A stretch of DNA of 64,000 nucleotides from Trichosphaerium sp. ATCC 40318 (taxonomy: Eukaryota > Protista > Tubulinea): NCBI GenBank assembly GCA_038496445.1, contig JALMLS010000257.1, positions 1 to 64,000 of the forward strand. Reading direction: 5' to 3'. The notes below the pieces were generated by a model. That model saw nothing but the letters and a program-made list of their open reading frames with translations, ran no database searches and was not told where the DNA came from. The position numbers were made by a program, and so were the translations under genes. Shown in pieces: positions 8,741-49,765 of this stretch (position 1 is its first letter; every line of letters starts with the position of its first letter).

Positions 8741-9119
8741 AATTTATCACCACACGCCAAATAGAATAGTGTGATGGTTTCTTGTAAAAATAAAGACTAC
8801 TTCAGAAGTAGTTAGTTGTTGTCGAATATTAAACTTAGCATGGTTGTGAAGCTGTGAAAGTGGTTTATGGTGCTTTCAGAGCACGTGACAAGGTATTAGG
8901 GAAAAGATTGTTTTTTTTTAACCCTTAGATAAACTGGTGTTTCTTACTTCTCAATACGCATGCTGCAAGTTCGTCTTCTTTCAACCTCTTCCCTAGTTGT
9001 AGAAGGCACAACAAAACACGTACTGTTAGTCCAATCCAAGAAATCCCACGTGATTACTTTAATTGACTGCTTTAGCCAAAGCCCGAGTAACAACAAACAA
9101 CCAAAGTAATAAGTGTAAA

Positions 9120-9683
9120 ATGGACCTTATCACATTGCCAGTTGAAATAATCGTACATATTCTTCTCCGAGGAAGGTTTACGCTACGTTCAGCTCAAACA
9201 TGCCACTTTCTACATGATATCGTCCACAAGCATGTAGGATATGGCAGTATTGAAGTATCGAGCATAGATGAATTAAAAATACTTTCTGGCAGTATGCTAC
9301 TACAGAATACAGCTATTTCTTTATTTAAATTGAAACGTGTTATAAACGACAGTCACTTGCGTTTACTTACAGGTGTACACACCATCAAGTTGATTTCCTG
9401 TAAACTGATAACAGACAATGGTATCTCGGCATTGGCTGGTGTGCATACAATAAACTTATCATTTACAAATGTTACAGATGAAGGTTTGAAGGCTTTGGCT
9501 GGTGTACATACAATTAAGTTATCAGGTACTAAGATAACAGATGAAGGTTTGAAGGTTTTAGTTGGTGCACATTGTATCAGACTAAGGCATTGCAAATTCA
9601 TAACAATTGCTGGTATCAGGCTATTATCTGGAGTCCATACAGTTTACTGGGGTAAAGGAAGGGAACCGCTAGCATTGCAATAG
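9120..9683 (+). CDS. Intronless F-box + leucine-rich repeat protein (short)
   Basis: MDLITLPVEIIVHIL (F-box-like start) followed by LAGVHTIxLS.T.ITDEGLK repeats; ATG at 9120. Confidence 0.85.
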   Translation: MDLITLPVEIIVHILLRGRFTLRSAQTCHFLHDIVHKHVGYGSIEVSSIDELKILSGSMLLQNTAISLFKLKRVINDSHLRLLTGVHTIKLISCKLITDNGISALAGVHTINLSFTNVTDEGLKALAGVHTIKLSGTKITDEGLKVLVGAHCIRLRHCKFITIAGIRLLSGVHTVYWGKGREPLALQ

Positions 9684-9690
9684 TGGTTAT

Positions 9691-12041
9691 CTCTTTCCGG
9701 GTAGTAAGTTGAAAAATTATGGATAGTAAAATTTTTTAAACAGCCCAGAAACCCTCGCAATCCACTCTTGCACGTCCATAAAACCCAATGCGAGACCATA
9801 AAAGGTCATGTAAAAATAAAAATTATGGATAGTAAAATCGCGGATAGTAAAACGTTGTCAAAACTCCTTAATAATCTTCAAAAACTCATCACATACGCAT
9901 GATAAACCTGTTGCGCGAGCATCTCACTAAAAACAAAACAAAAATTACAAAAAAGAGAAAAAGAGCAACTTCAACACGTGGAACAACTAAAAAACGTAAA
10001 CTAAGCAACAAACAAAAATATTTGACAGAACTTCAAGAACAATTCAAGTACCTTCCTGAAAATGGCTGGAAGGTTCTTCCTGATAGTAAAATACATCTTC
10101 CTGAGGTTTTGTGGATATCTCGGCCTAACTATCGGAATTTTGCGCGCATAAAATCAAACACAGATGCGCGCACTTACACTCTACAAATTTATACCAATTT
10201 AATTAAAAAACATATTTGGAATCACGTGGTCAAAAAAACAGAAGCAAAGCGGAGAAAACTTATGGATCAGTTCACAGCGCAAGGCATAAAGAAAAATACT
10301 TGGTGGAACACTAAAATCAACCACAAGGAAGTTATGAAATTCATAGGAACAGTATGGCTGTGGGAGCAAAGAAGCGGAGAAAAAGAATATGAGAAAGTTT
10401 GCAACCAATTCTATGAAGCCAACCCAGATTGGTTGAAGAATAATTCCTTGTTAAGCCGAACAAGATTTTCGATACTGAAGGCTTGTTTCTCATCAGACAT
10501 TCAAGGATTATGTAACTTGTTGAGTGACGCATTTATGAGAGGTTGGTTACCAGGAGATACTTCCACAATAGATGAAACCATTTTCAAATTTTTGGGTCAA
10601 AGTCGCTATATTATGTATGTACCAGGAAAACCAAATCCAAAGGGTTTAATGATATATGTACATGCTGTATTCTCTGACAAGTATGGTAAAAAGCCTTACA
10701 TACTTGGTATCATTCCTCACTGGGGGGAATATCGTAAAGCTCCAATTTCTCCGCTAGATGCTGCAAAAAAATTAATTATAAAATTTGAACAATTTTATGA
10801 GTATACACCGCATGTGGTAATGGATTCAAGATTCATGGAGGGGCATCTGGTAAGCTGGGTAGCTGCAAACTCACAGAAGAGCAAAACTGGTGGCATTACC
10901 GCTGCTCTTCCAAGTTCACACCAGAAGGAAATATTCGAACCACTTTCATATGGCCTTCCATGCAACAGGTGGAGAATAGCAACTAACTCTGAGGGTAAGG
11001 TGGCGTCATTCATGCGTAAGAAAAATAACAAGGGTAAAATTGTTGAGTGGCGGTTGCTTGGATACGGCTGGAACACTGGTGAACCAAAACAGACTCCAAC
11101 TCCCGTGTGTTTGTCTGATTACGAAAAAATATGTGGATTATCTCGTGAAACTTTAGTTTTTTTGTCACGGAAGTGTAACGGACATGGTATTGGAAACAAT
11201 ATTGAATTAGCGCAAGAGTTGTGTGAGCTCTCACCTGAGAAAGTAATGGCATTAGTGGAGAAGAAAAGGCAGAAAGCATCTTTAGTTGAACATCATAGAA
11301 CGAGGAGTAAAAAACCAGAATTACATTGTTTTGAAGATTGCCGACACAATAGAAAAGAAGTAGAAGACAAACCGATGATACGATGCGATTACTGTGATGT
11401 ATGGTACCACTCTGAATGCCTTGATTGGGACAATAAGACGTGGAAGAGAAAAAGTAAGGCCAAAGAATGGTTCTGTGATTTGTGTCAAAAACTTTATACA
11501 AAAGTTTTAGAAGGACGTGCTCACCTGACCCCAGAAATGTTAGAAAACAAGAAAAAACCATTCTTACAAAGATATTGTAGTACGTTGGGCCTCAAACAGC
11601 AAGGAAACAGACAGGCATTGATCAACAGACTCACAAATGCAACAAATCCAGAGTGTTTACAAAATATTGACTCTCAATTGCAACATTTTTTGGGTGCTCC
11701 ACGTCGTGATAAACCTATTCTACATGACTTCTATAACCATACATTTTCAGCTATTGATAAGGCTAATCAGTTGAGTTGGTCAAACACAACATCCTGTAGA
11801 GTTACAAGTGATGAGTGCCGAATGACTTTGGGTTTGCTAAAACTGACTTTAACGTGCACACATACAATTTGTGACTATGTTCTTCAAAAAGATGCTTTGA
11901 GCTTTTCCGATTTACACTACCTTGTAGCAACACAGTTGTTTACAGGGAAACTTTTGTAAGTCATTTGAAGATAATGTAAGTTCAACCGTTGTCAATAAAA
12001 TTTTACTATCCATAATTTTTTTGGTTACTATCCATAAAGAG
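9691..12041 (+). mobile_element. Apparently intact piggyBac-related DNA transposon with imperfect ~45-bp TIRs and GTTAT direct repeats
   Basis: Left end: CTCTTTCCGGGTAGTAAGTTGAAAAATTATGGATAGTAAAATTTT. Reverse complement of right end: CTCTTTATGGATAGTAACCAAAAAAATTATGGATAGTAAAATTTT. GTTAT at 9686-9690 and 12042-12046. Extra GGATAGTAAAA copies at ~9827-9852. Confidence 0.9.
9899..11959 (+). CDS. piggyBac-family (PGBD/DDE_Tnp_1_7-like) transposase, 686 aa, with inserted PHD finger and SAP domain(s)
   Basis: Motifs LSRTRF, TIDETIFKFLG...YVPGKPNPKG (D225), VVMDSRF (D309), FYNHTFSAIDKANQ (D620). PHD C4HC3 at 11327-11485. SAP-like LQRYCSTLGLKQQGNRQALINRL. Basic N-terminal NLS-like tract; no introns. 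Confidence 0.88.
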   Translation: MINLLREHLTKNKTKITKKRKRATSTRGTTKKRKLSNKQKYLTELQEQFKYLPENGWKVLPDSKIHLPEVLWISRPNYRNFARIKSNTDARTYTLQIYTNLIKKHIWNHVVKKTEAKRRKLMDQFTAQGIKKNTWWNTKINHKEVMKFIGTVWLWEQRSGEKEYEKVCNQFYEANPDWLKNNSLLSRTRFSILKACFSSDIQGLCNLLSDAFMRGWLPGDTSTIDETIFKFLGQSRYIMYVPGKPNPKGLMIYVHAVFSDKYGKKPYILGIIPHWGEYRKAPISPLDAAKKLIIKFEQFYEYTPHVVMDSRFMEGHLVSWVAANSQKSKTGGITAALPSSHQKEIFEPLSYGLPCNRWRIATNSEGKVASFMRKKNNKGKIVEWRLLGYGWNTGEPKQTPTPVCLSDYEKICGLSRETLVFLSRKCNGHGIGNNIELAQELCELSPEKVMALVEKKRQKASLVEHHRTRSKKPELHCFEDCRHNRKEVEDKPMIRCDYCDVWYHSECLDWDNKTWKRKSKAKEWFCDLCQKLYTKVLEGRAHLTPEMLENKKKPFLQRYCSTLGLKQQGNRQALINRLTNATNPECLQNIDSQLQHFLGAPRRDKPILHDFYNHTFSAIDKANQLSWSNTTSCRVTSDECRMTLGLLKLTLTCTHTICDYVLQKDALSFSDLHYLVATQLFTGKLL

Positions 12042-12725
12042 GTTATAGCTCAAACCACTCCAAAAAACCCGAGCTATAAATAAAAAAAAACCACCGTTAT
12101 TCTACACATTACTTAGTGGGTGTAACAGGTTATACGGGCTGTTGATGTTTAGGTAGAACCTATTTAAATGTGTTTCTATTGGAAATAATGTGGTAGGACC
12201 AGTAAATTAACAATCAACTAATTTAAGTATCACACTGGGGACACATGTCAAACAGCAAAATAAAGTGTCATTCATAAAATAATACGGATGGATACTTAGT
12301 GATCTTTCAGGCGCTGTTGTACGCTATAACTAAGCCACGTGTTATTAACAAAAAGCCAAGTACGAACCTAGCCTATTTTTACCCCTTAGTCGCTGTTATA
12401 ACTCGAAATTGTTGGTATGACTCTGTACATTTTTTACTTAAACACGATTGAGTCCAAAAAACAACTAAAAAAAAACCGCTTCAAGTCACGTGGACCTGAG
12501 TAAGTCGAAATCGGTCACGACTTCCGTACAGTCGTTTAACAACTTAACAACCATTACTTTCTGTCAGCAAACGTCGTACAGCCGCTAAACGCCACATCGC
12601 ACCCACTTTAATACTGTTTTGCAGCTACAATATGTCAAGCCAAGGTCTAGTCGCCCATCAAAGGTATCATGCTAATATTGCTTTGTTTGATCATCTGACA
12701 TCCAGCTAGCACACCAATACATCTT

Positions 12726-13487
12726 TTGGAGTTACCTACAGAGATTTTGGCTCATATTTTATGTCACACGAATAAAGCACGATTTAAAGCTTGTCAAACA
12801 TGCCATCTCATTCATGATATCATTGGATACGAAAATGTGATGATATCATCTGTTGAACAAGCAAATGCGCTGTTAAAACACCATAGCACTCTAGAGCACA
12901 CAAAAATCAGATTACACTACAATTGGAGAGGTGATCTAACAAGGTTTGCTGGCGTTCATACCATCAATCTTGATTGTTGTAATAATATTAAAGGCAAAGA
13001 CATAAAACCCCTTGCTGGTGTTCATACTATCAATCTCGATTGTTGTTTTGGTATTAAAGATGAAGATATAAAGTACCTTGCTGGCGTTCATTCCATCAAT
13101 CTCACATGTTGTGGTATTACAGATGAAGGGGTAAAAGCTCTTTCTGGTGTTCATACTATAAACCTCAGTTCATGCCGTGGTATTACAGATGAAGGGATGA
13201 AATACCTTGCTGGCGTTCATACCATTGATGTTTCTCACACTTTGGTTACAGATGAAGGGATAAAAGCTCTTTCTGGTGTTCATACTATAAACCTCAGTTC
13301 ATGTGGTATTACAGATGAAGGGGTAAAAGCTCTTTCTGGTGTTCATACTATAAACCTCAGTTCGTGCCATGATATTACAGATGAAGGGATAAAATCCCTT
13401 GCTGGTGTTCATACCATTGATGTTTCTGGCACTTTGGTTACAATTAAAGAGCTACAAGCTCTCTCTGCACATACAATAGTTTATTAG
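12726..13487 (+). CDS. F-box + LRR protein (true start possibly ATG 12632 via a small intron)
   Basis: LELPTEILAHIL followed by about 8 GVHTINLxxCx(x)ITDEGVKALS repeats. The ORF as called begins at TTG. Confidence 0.8.
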   Translation: MELPTEILAHILCHTNKARFKACQTCHLIHDIIGYENVMISSVEQANALLKHHSTLEHTKIRLHYNWRGDLTRFAGVHTINLDCCNNIKGKDIKPLAGVHTINLDCCFGIKDEDIKYLAGVHSINLTCCGITDEGVKALSGVHTINLSSCRGITDEGMKYLAGVHTIDVSHTLVTDEGIKALSGVHTINLSSCGITDEGVKALSGVHTINLSSCHDITDEGIKSLAGVHTIDVSGTLVTIKELQALSAHTIVY

Positions 13488-32633: not shown

Positions 32634-34168
32634 CTCGTTATTCGTAACAAAAAAAAAAATTACGCGTAACAAATTTTAATAAAAACCCCTGTTGACCATG
32701 ACAACATTAATACCACTACATTGGTTACCTATTCCAATAGTTTAAAAGTTGCTTCACGCAAATTAAAACCCAAACCGTTACACAATCATGAAATCGCGTA
32801 AAAGCCGTGCTGCTATGCGTCAATTACTGCTTGACAATGCAGCCGGATGCAGGAGCAGGCGATAGCCTAAAATCGCTAAAATATCGTGCACTCAGACATA
32901 AAACAAGCTAAAAGCCAACAGGAAGAGACAAATGCAAATGACAGAGCAGAGTGAAAAGCTAAACAAAGTTATCGATGAAGGTTGGCGAGTGTTGACATAT
33001 GAGCAAATTTTCCTTCCCCCGAAATTGAGCACATCTCTAAACCCAGTAGCAAAACTGGGAGTTCCAATACAATGCAAAGAAGTGTTTGAGTGGTTGGTAA
33101 TAAGTCAGAATTAATTGATAGACTTTTAAAGGCACGTGATCCTACTTTTGAAAACAGCTTTAATATCCATACTAAGCTAGTTTTTGGGGCTGTTCAGCTG
33201 TGATACATTCATTTTATACAACTCACTTTGATGTTGTTGATCATGCTAATCAAACTAAATGGAGTACTTCAATGCCTGGGCAGTGTATAGAGCAAAACTA
33301 TCGAATGACTGTGGGAATTATGAAAATGACAATTACATCCCCCGTGGCCATCACAGATTACAATATAGTATCAAAGTGTCCTGACCATGGTCAAATACAT
33401 CTTGTACTTGCAAAGGCCTTGTTTTGTGGTGATGTTTATAATTCTGAATAAAGTGTATTTTTTTTTTGTTGGACACCCAAAAAACAATCCAAAAAATGCT
33501 TTCACCAATAGGTAACTTTAAAAAAGATGGTGTTAGTTGAAGGAGATGCTGTATTTCAGACGATCAAATGATCAATATTGACTAGGTGCACAATATTAGC
33601 ATAAAAATGAATTGCTACATACACACAAAAGAGACAAAAAACTATTTTCTGAACCTGTTTGTAGCTAACTGTAACAAACCTTTTACATCTAGCACTCATA
33701 TATAAGCAATATAAAGATGTTAGAAAGTGAAATTACTAAAAAATTTATTCAAGAGTCTGTGTAGTACATGCGACAACTTTGCAAAAATCAAAAAAAACAA
33801 TCTCAACAATTTTTGAGGTGTCTGTCAATTCTGTCATTACACTAAAAAACTTCAAGTTTAATGAGGTTTGTTTAATACCATTCTATTTTATGTGTTGTAT
33901 ATATAAACAACAATGCTTGGACAAAAGATGGAATATTATTGCAAACTTTATAACAAATACCGAAAAAACCCACTAAAATTGGAATCAGTCAGCTGACAAT
34001 GCTGGCTTGTTCACAAATTCCATGATTGCATCAAAGTATATCCTGCACTTGTAGGCATGATTAAAACGTATATGGCGTTTCTCAAAAAAAAATAAAACAA
34101 GGACACTGAGTCACTTGCCCAGGAAAAATTTGTTACGCGTAACTTTTTTTTTTGTTACGCGTAATGAG
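32634..34168 (+). mobile_element. Non-autonomous, internally deleted piggyBac-related element B (1535 bp), ATTAA direct repeats
   Basis: Left end CTCGTTATTCGTAAC-A11-TTACGCGTAACAAATTTT; right end AAAATTTGTTACGCGTAAC-T10-GTTACGCGTAATGAG. ATTAA at 32629-32633 and 34169-34173. Contains transposase remnants. Confidence 0.9.
32788..33451 (+). pseudogene. Internally deleted transposase pseudogene homologous to 9899..11959
   Basis: EGWRVLTYEQIFLP vs NGWKVLPDSKIHLP; GNKSELIDRLLKARDP vs GNRQALINRLTNATNP (SAP); IHSFYTTHFDVVDHANQ vs LHDFYNHTFSAIDKANQ; RMTVGIMKMTIT vs RMTLGLLKLTLT. Stops and frameshifts present; the central catalytic region is deleted. Confidence 0.85.
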
Positions 34169-48820: not shown

Positions 48821-49765
48821 ATGGAACAAGTAACGCACTTATTTTACCTTACTATGCTCCCAGTTGAAGTAATAGTTCATATTCTTAAACAAGGGCCATA
48901 CACACTTCGTTCAGCCCAAACATGCCGCTTATTGCGAGATATCGTTCATACTCATGTTGGATATGGTAAAATCTATGTTTTAGACAGAAGTGAAGTGAAA
49001 ATTCTATCTGGTAGTCCATTACTGAAGAACTCAGCAATTTCTTTTGATTACTTTACTAACGTAACTGACAGACACGTACAATTACTAGCAGGCATTCACA
49101 CCATCATTCTAAGACATTGTACCCGAATAACAGATGATAGTTTGGAGGCATTGGCCGGTGTACACACAATTCACTTAAAGCTTTGTAAGTATATAACAGA
49201 TGAAGGTGTGAAGGCATTGGCTGGTGTACATGAGATTGATTTATCCATGACAAATATAACAGATGAAGGTTTGAAGGCTTTATCTGGTGTACACACTATT
49301 CGCTTACGGTATTGTAACTCAATAACAGCTGAAGGTTTAAGGGCGTTGGCTGGTGTACATAAAATTGATTTATATTGTGCCTCAACAACAGATGAAGGTT
49401 TGAAGGCGTTGGCTGGTGTACATGAGATTGATTTGGCCATGGCAGAAATAACAGATGAAGGTTTGAAGTCATTGGCTGGTGTACACACTATTCACATTGC
49501 CTCTTGTTACTTAATAACAGATGAAGGTGTGAAGGCGTTGGCTGGTGTGCATACAATTGATTTATCACAAACAAATATAACAGATGACAGTTTGAAGTCA
49601 TTGGCTGGTGTGCATACAATTGATTTATCACAAACAAACATAACAGATCAAGGTTTGATATTTTTGGTAGGTGTGCATACTATCAATATCACCCATTGCT
49701 ATAGTATAACGGATAAGGGCATTGAAGTACTAAATAGCGCGTTTAAGATAATCAGAGGGTATTAA
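48821..49765 (+). CDS. Intronless F-box + LRR protein, 314 aa
   Basis: LTMLPVEVIVHIL; TLRSAQTC...HVGY shared with paralogs at 9120 and 22006; about 10 LAGVHxIxL repeats. Confidence 0.9.
   Translation: MEQVTHLFYLTMLPVEVIVHILKQGPYTLRSAQTCRLLRDIVHTHVGYGKIYVLDRSEVKILSGSPLLKNSAISFDYFTNVTDRHVQLLAGIHTIILRHCTRITDDSLEALAGVHTIHLKLCKYITDEGVKALAGVHEIDLSMTNITDEGLKALSGVHTIRLRYCNSITAEGLRALAGVHKIDLYCASTTDEGLKALAGVHEIDLAMAEITDEGLKSLAGVHTIHIASCYLITDEGVKALAGVHTIDLSQTNITDDSLKSLAGVHTIDLSQTNITDQGLIFLVGVHTINITHCYSITDKGIEVLNSAFKIIRGY

Follow-up and report, generated by a model that had tools for sequence, protein, structure and literature searches.

We describe a transposon at positions 9691 to 12041 of a 64,000-nucleotide (nt) stretch of DNA from Trichosphaerium sp. 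ATCC 40318 (contig JALMLS010000257.1, positions 1 to 64,000); this whole stretch is called the window below. The element carries a single intronless gene whose product, judging from its sequence and predicted structure, is a transposase of the DDD type that falls in the structural family of piggyBac. Inside its catalytic domain lies a cassette of two SAP modules separated by a PHD finger, the C-terminal cysteine-rich tail of piggyBac is missing and the ends of the element are not of the piggyBac type. The features of the locus are as follows, with their strand and the basis of each assignment; pLDDT is the predicted local distance difference test score of the structural model.

9686-9690, no strand: putative target-site duplication GTTAT, left copy, identical to 12042-12046 (sequence reading)
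9691-12041, + strand: whole transposon, 2351 bp (inverted repeats at its ends, direct 5-bp repeat on either side)
9691-9742, + strand: left terminal inverted repeat, 52 nt, tip 5'-CTCTTT (repeat search; 81% complementary to the right one)
9719-9850, + strand: left subterminal repeats, three GGATAGTAA cores at 9721, 9827 and 9842, candidate transposase binding sites (motif search)
9899-11959, + strand: transposase open reading frame (ORF), 686 amino acids, ATG start, no internal stop (ORF list, Pfam)
10184-10843, + strand: residues 96-315, helical DNA-binding/dimerisation part at the N-terminal side, plus the RNase H-type core's first half (Pfam DDE_Tnp_1_7, alignment to 6x67)
10571-10573, + strand: codon GAT of D225 (codon check)
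10823-10825, + strand: codon GAT of D309 (codon check)
10967-11065, + strand: residues 357-389, three-stranded beta insertion domain as in piggyBac (model strands 357-362, 367-375 and 381-389, pLDDT about 96)
11111-11236, + strand: residues 405-446, SAP module 1, diverged (profile-profile match to SAP module 2)
11264-11326, + strand: residues 456-476, basic linker, predicted disordered (pLDDT < 50)
11327-11485, + strand: residues 477-529, PHD finger (Pfam PHD)
11375-11377, + strand: codon of M493 (codon check)
11402-11404, + strand: codon of W502 (codon check)
11546-11641, + strand: residues 550-581, SAP module 2 (Pfam SAP; model helices 553-562 and 571-582)
11696-11956, + strand: D620-bearing helix and C-terminal part of the helical DNA-binding domain (aligns with piggyBac 432-480)
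11756-11758, + strand: codon GAT of D620 (codon check)
11990-12041, - strand: right terminal inverted repeat, 52 nt, tip ...AAAGAG-3' (repeat search, paired with the left one)
12001-12033, - strand: right subterminal repeats, two GGATAGTAA cores (motif search)
12042-12046, no strand: putative target-site duplication GTTAT, right copy (sequence reading)

The element and its ends

The element at 9691-12041 is an autonomous cut-and-paste DNA transposon, and it looks recently active. The two GTTAT copies that flank it agree in five of five bases and the sixth base differs; by our own estimate, such a match in exact register with the inverted repeats would arise by chance about once in 1000 cases. 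The exact GGATAGTAA core, searched for across the window, is confined to the element.

These ends depart from two hallmarks of piggyBac. Canonical piggyBac tips are of the CCC...GGG type, and here they read CTCTTT...AAAGAG. Likewise, TTAA was not found at either junction of 9691-12041, where both flanks are GTTAT; the integration into TTAA with a 4-bp duplication that marks piggyBac is thus not what we see, a result that has few insertions behind it.

The close relatives of the transposase, all of which lie on metagenome contigs of about 2.2-2.9 kb, show that the unusual tips are inherited. The element of the closest one, P0005, is present on four contigs (L002-L005) that are 100% identical across 2220 bp and then diverge, which fixes its ends exactly at CTCGTT...AACGAG. 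The element of a second relative, P0142, is identical on two contigs (L007 and L008) across 2370 bp and has the same CTCGTT tip. Taken together with the window copy, these tips make CTC(G/T)TT...AA(C/A)GAG a family trait. The flanks of the relatives are mostly unpaired and mostly not TTAA; on L004 they read TTGAA and CTGAA, four of five matching in a 5-bp register. Such unpaired flanks are probably due to the arbitrary pairing of flanks when identical copies are assembled, and we count them neither way. The ends of a member of the broader clade were not found on the long contig L006, which gave low-complexity matches only. A scan of metagenome contigs for the terminal motif CTCTTTNNGGRTAGTAA gave at least 120 matches, none near a related transposase by tblastn, so that we ascribe them to chance.

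Two public sequencing runs contain no more than small shares of the element. One of them, the small run X1, holds a 1009-nt contig with a variant of the left end (window 9704-10021), in which a 118-bp segment is swapped for 18 other letters and several substitutions are present. Diverged copies of the element therefore exist in other data sets. The other run, which may be RNA, gave a single 245-nt contig at 98.8% identity that has no bearing on expression either way.

The transposase and its internal cassette

Pfam places DDE_Tnp_1_7 on residues 96-315 of the product (E 1.6e-7, over the cut-off) and matches only the first 218 of the 349 profile positions, as is expected if an insert displaces the second half of the core. 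A phmmer search of solved structures pairs residues 204-262 with residues 247-305 of T. ni piggyBac, which puts D225 on D268, and residues 605-655 with piggyBac 432-480, which puts D620 on D447; D309 is the counterpart of piggyBac D346. In the piggyBac structures obtained by cryo-electron microscopy, these three residues, D268, D346 and D447, make up the active site (PMC7351741). In a 143-row alignment of the family, aspartate stands in 92 of the 96 filled rows at the D225 column, in 89 of 95 at the D309 column and in 59 of 65 at the D620 column. The N-terminus of the protein is basic (KKRKR...KKRK) and looks like a nuclear localisation signal.

Structure prediction without an alignment was unusable (pLDDT 39). 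Given 142 homologues, AlphaFold2 returned a model with a mean pLDDT of 87.2 and a predicted template modelling score (pTM) of 0.80. Foldseek ranks the piggyBac strand-transfer complex first for this model (6x67_C, E 1e-11), then piggyBat and then Tn5. VIA-align superposes it on 6x67_C with Z 29.1 and a root-mean-square deviation of 3.4 Å over 364 aligned residues, model residues 72-684 corresponding to piggyBac 117-514; the score is Z 28.2 for piggyBat and Z 17 for Tn5, the next family. Thus the segment past the cassette rejoins the piggyBac fold, as the match runs to residue 684, and both the DDD RNase H-type core and the helical DNA-binding/dimerisation domain of the piggyBac superfamily are found in the protein.

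Past D309, the model runs through a helix, a strand and a helix before it reaches the three strands of the insertion domain. A three-stranded insertion domain interrupts the piggyBac core after its fifth strand (PMC7351741), and the window protein has it in the same place. The cassette, of roughly 200 residues, lies between this domain and the D620 helix. Its modelled order is four short helices (405-454), the disordered linker (456-476), the PHD (477-537) and three helices (545-582); a long helix (584-598) closes it and the D620 helix follows.

The segment of SAP module 1 lacks a Pfam match, both in the window protein and in nine relatives, and it found no significant counterpart when solved structures were searched with a profile. 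Its profile, built from 28 clade members, aligns in register with that of module 2, built from 46, over 36 columns (hhalign probability 95.7%, E 9.6e-9), and in the relative P0059 a Pfam SAP match (386-409) falls within module 1. We therefore count two SAP modules, the first of them diverged. Module 2 scores 23.6 bits against a Pfam cut-off of 23.9, and up to 37.7 bits at the same position in relatives; the profile match, the helix-loop-helix of about 35 residues and the Leu/Gly pattern that characterise SAP domains are all found here.

The PHD finger scores 28.1 bits at residues 481-529 (Pfam cut-off 24) and has the complete Cys4-His-Cys3 ligand set, C477-x3-C481 ... C496-x2-C499-x4-H504-x2-C507 ... 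C526-x2-C529. Its first zinc pair is spaced C-x3-C, versus the canonical C-x2-C or C-x-C, a spacing common to P0005 and to another metagenome protein, P0111. In ING2, TAF3 and RAG2, the M-I-x-C and W-x-H positions are two walls of the methyl-lysine cage. Here the PMIRCDYCDVWYH stretch fits the MIxC...W-x-H pattern, with M493 and W502 aligned to the matching stretch of CFP1 and Bye1; the third cage position, right before the first cysteine, is His476, and Phe in P0005. Among solved structures, the finger is matched best by an Arabidopsis PHD, SHPRH, CFP1, Bye1, KAT6A, Pygo2, DIDO1, TAF3, PHF23, BPTF and RAG2, and several of CFP1, Bye1, TAF3, DIDO1, PHF23, Pygo2, BPTF and RAG2 are readers of histone H3 trimethylated at lysine 4 (H3K4me3). 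Database proteins matching the PHD alone include zf-CW/PHD/YEATS reader proteins. Because this PHD resembles the CFP1, TAF3, Bye1 and RAG2 types and has M493 and W502 in place, its sequence makes histone reading plausible.

P0111, a protein of 677 amino acids, combines a PHD with a GDSL esterase and a CCHC knuckle, a domain set that we take to be the ORF1 type of CR1-like long interspersed nuclear elements (LINEs). Its PHD shares the unusual C-x3-C-[KR]-H-N-R start with that of the transposase, at 32% identity over 101 residues (E 1e-10). This shared start hints at exchange between mobile elements, among which this PHD subtype may circulate. We also considered that the internal PHD might be the piggyBac tail relocated inward and rejected this, as it matches chromatin PHDs and the PHD of another transposable element, not the piggyBac tail.

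At the C-terminus, only 66 residues follow D620, with three cysteines and two histidines but no paired zinc-ligand motif, and the stop codon falls 30 nt short of the right inverted repeat, leaving no room for a cysteine-rich domain at the C-terminus. This PHD-like domain is given as a feature of all piggyBac transposases (PMC5381638). In piggyBac it binds the repeats of the transposon ends and anchors the enzyme on the internal repeats of one end (PMC7351741).

An earlier note, made from the letters of the window, had proposed much of this; its observation stands, and its interpretation stands in part. It called the protein a piggyBac-like transposase with putative catalytic aspartates D225, D309 and D620 spaced by 84 and 311 residues; the codons, the piggyBac alignment and the conserved columns bear out the triad, the Pfam and structural matches bear out the kinship, and the superposition places D620 in one RNase H-type core with D225 and D309. 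A SAP-like/PHD/SAP cassette is indeed found in that order inside the catalytic domain, and its "SAP-like" helix pair proves to be a genuine, diverged SAP. The picture of a cassette inserted into the catalytic core needs amending: the core was already interrupted, and the cassette trails the normal insertion domain, at the place in the topology that generally takes up insertions in DDE transposases (PMC7351741). The finger described there as canonical has the full ligand set but an atypical first pair. The Met of MIxC and the Trp of WxH are where the note put them, and the tail is absent as it said. The H3K4me3 reading and the parallel with RAG1 plus the RAG2 PHD that it proposed would fit this sequence signature, although the third cage position is His (Phe in P0005). 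It made no mention of the CTC...GAG ends and the 5-bp GTTAT duplication, both of them unlike piggyBac.

Relatives and genomic setting

A word-indexed protein search returned no homologues of the transposase. An exhaustive HMMER search yielded 141 proteins, 29 of them with E < 1e-10, and these place the window protein in a eukaryotic lineage that is wide and undescribed. Its members have no cysteine-rich tail and have a long D2-D3 stretch (between the second and third catalytic aspartates), usually with one or two SAP modules right before D3. Among the 47 proteins in which both D2 and D3 could be placed, the spacing ranges from 98 to 378 residues and is mostly 180-260, Pfam detects SAP in 20 and PHD in two, and at most 83 residues (mostly 57-75) follow D3 in all except P0035 (228) and P0139 (134). 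The P0005 gene contains a 44-nt AT-rich GT...AG intron right before its D2 motif (L002:936-981), which is lacking in the window copy; the DNA of this relative is therefore eukaryotic.

P0005 also has a genuine PHD between two SAP modules, at 33% overall identity to the window protein. In a tree of the core, from which the columns of the cassette were taken out, these two fall outside a group of four (support 97) whose members carry a CxxC...CxxC zinc knuckle, and the six together form a subclade with support 100. The zinc module is limited to this subclade, as a PHD in two members and a reduced Cys4 knuckle in four. The four cysteines of the knuckle align with PHD pairs 2 and 4, and a following helix ending in ...EG is common to both forms. 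The simplest reading of these sequences would be a PHD at the base of the six that one branch later reduced to a single zinc site.

Elsewhere in the clade the insert holds other material. P0013 (746 amino acids), which has the longest D2-D3 spacing at 378 residues, carries an acidic Ser/Glu-rich low-complexity stretch between its two SAP modules in place of a zinc module. Four relatives (P0017:218-260, P0023:217-259, P0028:217-259 and P0073:202-244) have a chromodomain-like motif, Y-E-T-x-W-x-D-G-D-x-T-W-E/Q-P, at the position of SAP module 1. These four segments gave no Pfam chromodomain match at E 0.1; if the likeness is real, this insertion point would house chromatin readers of two kinds. 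In the ESM Atlas, DDE_Tnp_1_7 occurs together with SAP in clusters that are unnamed or were named automatically, whose few members with a recorded phylum are Chlorophyta, and a neighbouring cluster lacking SAP is recorded from Bacillariophyta.

Within the window, a decayed second copy of the transposase, copy B, was recovered:

33093-33436, + strand: D3 region and trace of the SAP-2 helix, frameshifted (tblastn with the window protein and family members)

Its D3 region (33194-33436) is 32-43% identical to family members, and the trace of the helix at 33093-33146 is faint; no ends or terminal repeats were recognisable by repeat and motif searches in the window. The earlier note had argued that copy B keeps the SAP right before D3 and that the architecture is hence a family trait. 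The D3 region is there, and of the SAP we see a weak trace of the SAP-2 helix. Copy B thus bears out this argument only in part, and the relatives elsewhere make the better case: the large D2-D3 insert, the internal SAP and the absence of a tail are inherited across the clade, but the PHD is found in only two of 47 proteins.

The element sits in a cluster of intronless F-box and LRR_6 (leucine-rich repeat) genes with highly similar repeat units, whose ORFs lie at 9063-9683, at 12726-13487, further on to about 22000, and at 49100-49700. It starts 7 bp (9684-9690) past the stop codon of the F-box/leucine-rich-repeat ORF 9063-9683, and the next such ORF follows about 680 bp downstream. The left flank resembles many paralogous leucine-rich repeats across the window; an empty paralogous insertion site was not found there, the left flank matching this gene family only. 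The window has about 36% GC and is AT-rich, with sparse long ORFs, and on this ground reads as eukaryotic DNA.

Target choice, rival readings and known systems

We propose, with a probability of roughly 0.6, that this is a mobile piggyBac-type transposon in which the SAP modules anchor DNA, the PHD docks on the H3 tail and the target is cut with a 5-nt stagger. The target-DNA channel of piggyBac has the insertion domain as its lining (PMC7351741). SAP modules suspended from the end of this domain, in a lineage without a tail, are therefore proposed as the missing DNA anchor: the twin modules would take over the role of the cysteine-rich tail and may bind the subterminal GGATAGTAA repeats, bent AT-rich target DNA, or both. 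The PHD, on its flexible basic linker, would dock on an H3 tail, most likely one with K4 methylation, in an adjacent nucleosome, and so bias integration to promoter-proximal nucleosomes. In piggyBac the geometry of the dimer mandates 4 bp (PMC7351741). A 5-bp duplication would imply an altered offset between the two active sites, and such a shift would yield the 5-nt stagger.

Several observations weigh against this proposal. The 5-bp duplication has behind it one perfect case and the four-of-five case on L004, and module 2 falls 0.3 bits below the Pfam cut-off in the window protein. The PHD has C-x3-C as its first zinc pair, and in place of a Tyr or Trp it has His476 at the cage position ahead of that pair. 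Moreover, among the six closest relatives, four carry no more than a Cys4 knuckle, and this is unable to form a methyl-lysine cage, so that histone reading cannot be the conserved job of the zinc module. Finally, the public-run data do not show transcription of the transposase gene. A more ambitious version of the proposal, which we offer tentatively and hold to be doubtful as a whole, is a chromatin-guided transposase whose nested PHD would read H3K4me3 beside the target channel as the SAP modules hold DNA, directing integration to active promoters with a 5-nt stagger at non-TTAA sites, as a single-chain counterpart of RAG1 plus RAG2.

The zinc module might have another job altogether. As a PHD here and a Cys4 knuckle in the sister group, it could be a DNA-binding or structural stand-in for the lost tail, holding the transposon ends or the dimer, its likeness to H3K4me3 readers being inherited from the captured domain and now unused. 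The cysteine-rich domain of piggyBac is, for its part, a cross-brace finger of PHD-like form with DNA rather than histones as its ligand (PMC8086355, PMC7351741), and what the four knuckle-bearing relatives conserve, ligand pairs 2 and 4 with the helix that follows, is not the histone-binding surface; the His or Phe at the first cage position and the atypical zinc pair fit such a role too. However, both PHD-bearing members retain the full ligand set and the M...W pair in spite of their low overall identity, their best sequence matches are chromatin readers rather than the piggyBac cysteine-rich domain, and the flexible basic linker ahead of the PHD suits a tethered reader. We regard this stand-in role as possible, at well below even odds.

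Two further readings would make the element immobile. The protein could be a domesticated host gene, like the PGBD genes or the ciliate PiggyMac and Tpb2, using its PHD and SAP modules in a chromatin function. Its ORF is intact and copy B is broken, and ciliate domesticated piggyBac transposases contact histone H3 (PMC8086355, PMC3861120). Yet the ORF nearly fills its element, around it lie 52-nt inverted repeats, subterminal repeats and a direct repeat in the flanks, its relatives are identical 2.2-2.4-kb units with different flanks, all three catalytic aspartates are retained, and its position between two members of a host gene family is that of an insertion; given the intact transposon ends, we reject domestication as highly improbable. 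Alternatively, the element could be immobile in spite of its intact ORF, with GTTAT a coincidence in a lineage that integrates at TTAA-like sites with a 4-bp stagger. There is one perfect flank pair only, several flanks are AT-rich and TTAA-like, and TTAA abuts the left tip in two contigs of a related element. Among the eleven flanks read, however, TTAA stands beside the tip in those two left flanks only, the window flanks match in all five positions in exact register with the inverted-repeat ends, L004 comes close in the same register, and the tips are CTC...GAG and not of the piggyBac type. We give this reading very little probability, and the mobile, SAP-anchored transposon with a PHD that may dock on H3 remains the reading we prefer.

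The component parts of this system are known. In the literature searched (full text), we found no description of a piggyBac transposase combined with SAP, or with PHD and SAP, and the arrangement and the non-piggyBac ends are undescribed there. The largest recent survey, in which 116,216 elements were mined, required the cysteine-rich domain and a TTAA duplication and used a TTAACC filter, which fits the canonical piggyBac tip (PMC13461360). With these filters, the lineage of the window element would have been discarded. The matter has practical weight, as piggyBac is a main gene-insertion tool and three textbook hallmarks of it are held to be universal: it targets TTAA, the geometry of its dimer fixes a 4-bp offset, and a zinc finger at the C-terminus binds the transposon ends. 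An intact, tailless member with an apparently altered stagger and target, in which a PHD of the histone-reader type and two SAP modules sit where the target channel opens, is a concrete system that bears on how the piggyBac fold encodes target choice and on whether a DNA transposase can read chromatin marks directly. If it does so here, such chromatin-guided reading would be a natural template for targeted integration tools.

Set beside T. ni piggyBac (6x67/6x68) and piggyBat (9c0f), the window protein has the same overall fold, with more than 350 residues aligned at the Z scores given above, the same DDD triad positions, an insertion domain that is likewise three-stranded and follows the fifth strand, and the same helical DNA-binding/dimerisation domain assembled from segments before and after the core, at about 14-19% identity. 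It differs in the SAP-PHD-SAP cassette between the insertion domain and the D3 helix, which brings the D2-D3 spacing to 311 residues versus 101 in piggyBac, and in lacking the C-terminal cysteine-rich domain; the fourth aspartate of piggyBac (D450) is Asn here, and the element has CTC...GAG tips and a 5-bp GTTAT flank in place of 4-bp TTAA.

The piggyBac family offers a precedent for a zinc module that contacts the H3 tail: the cysteine-rich domain of PiggyMac binds H3 weakly, and that of Tpb2 prefers H3 trimethylated at K9 or K27 (H3K9me3/K27me3) (PMC8086355). There, however, the module is the C-terminal cysteine-rich domain (in PiggyMac a C1-like fold, not a PHD) of host genes without transposon ends, whereas here it is a canonical PHD of the chromatin type that lies within a mobile element's catalytic domain. 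RAG1/RAG2 likewise couples a DDE recombinase to a PHD that reads H3K4me3, and the RAG2 PHD is among the sequence matches to ours. In RAG1, too, the stretch from the second to the third catalytic residue includes zinc-binding modules. RAG1 belongs to a different superfamily, Transib, the PHD is on a separate subunit and the parallel would be functional only. Among other mobile elements, CR1-like ORF1 proteins with esterase and PHD domains were reportedly described by Kapitonov and Jurka in 2003, and the Mutator-like Rehavkus transposases carry a PHD finger (PMC6446971); both belong to other superfamilies or classes, and their PHD is not nested in a catalytic domain. The position after the fifth strand is the common insertion location in DDE transposases (PMC7351741), and the insertion domains of Hermes/hAT, the P element, Tn5 and RAG1 occupy this same topological site before the third carboxylate; in the window protein, by comparison, the native insertion domain has gained recognisable, independently folding domains of chromatin- and DNA-binding type, namely SAP, PHD and SAP.

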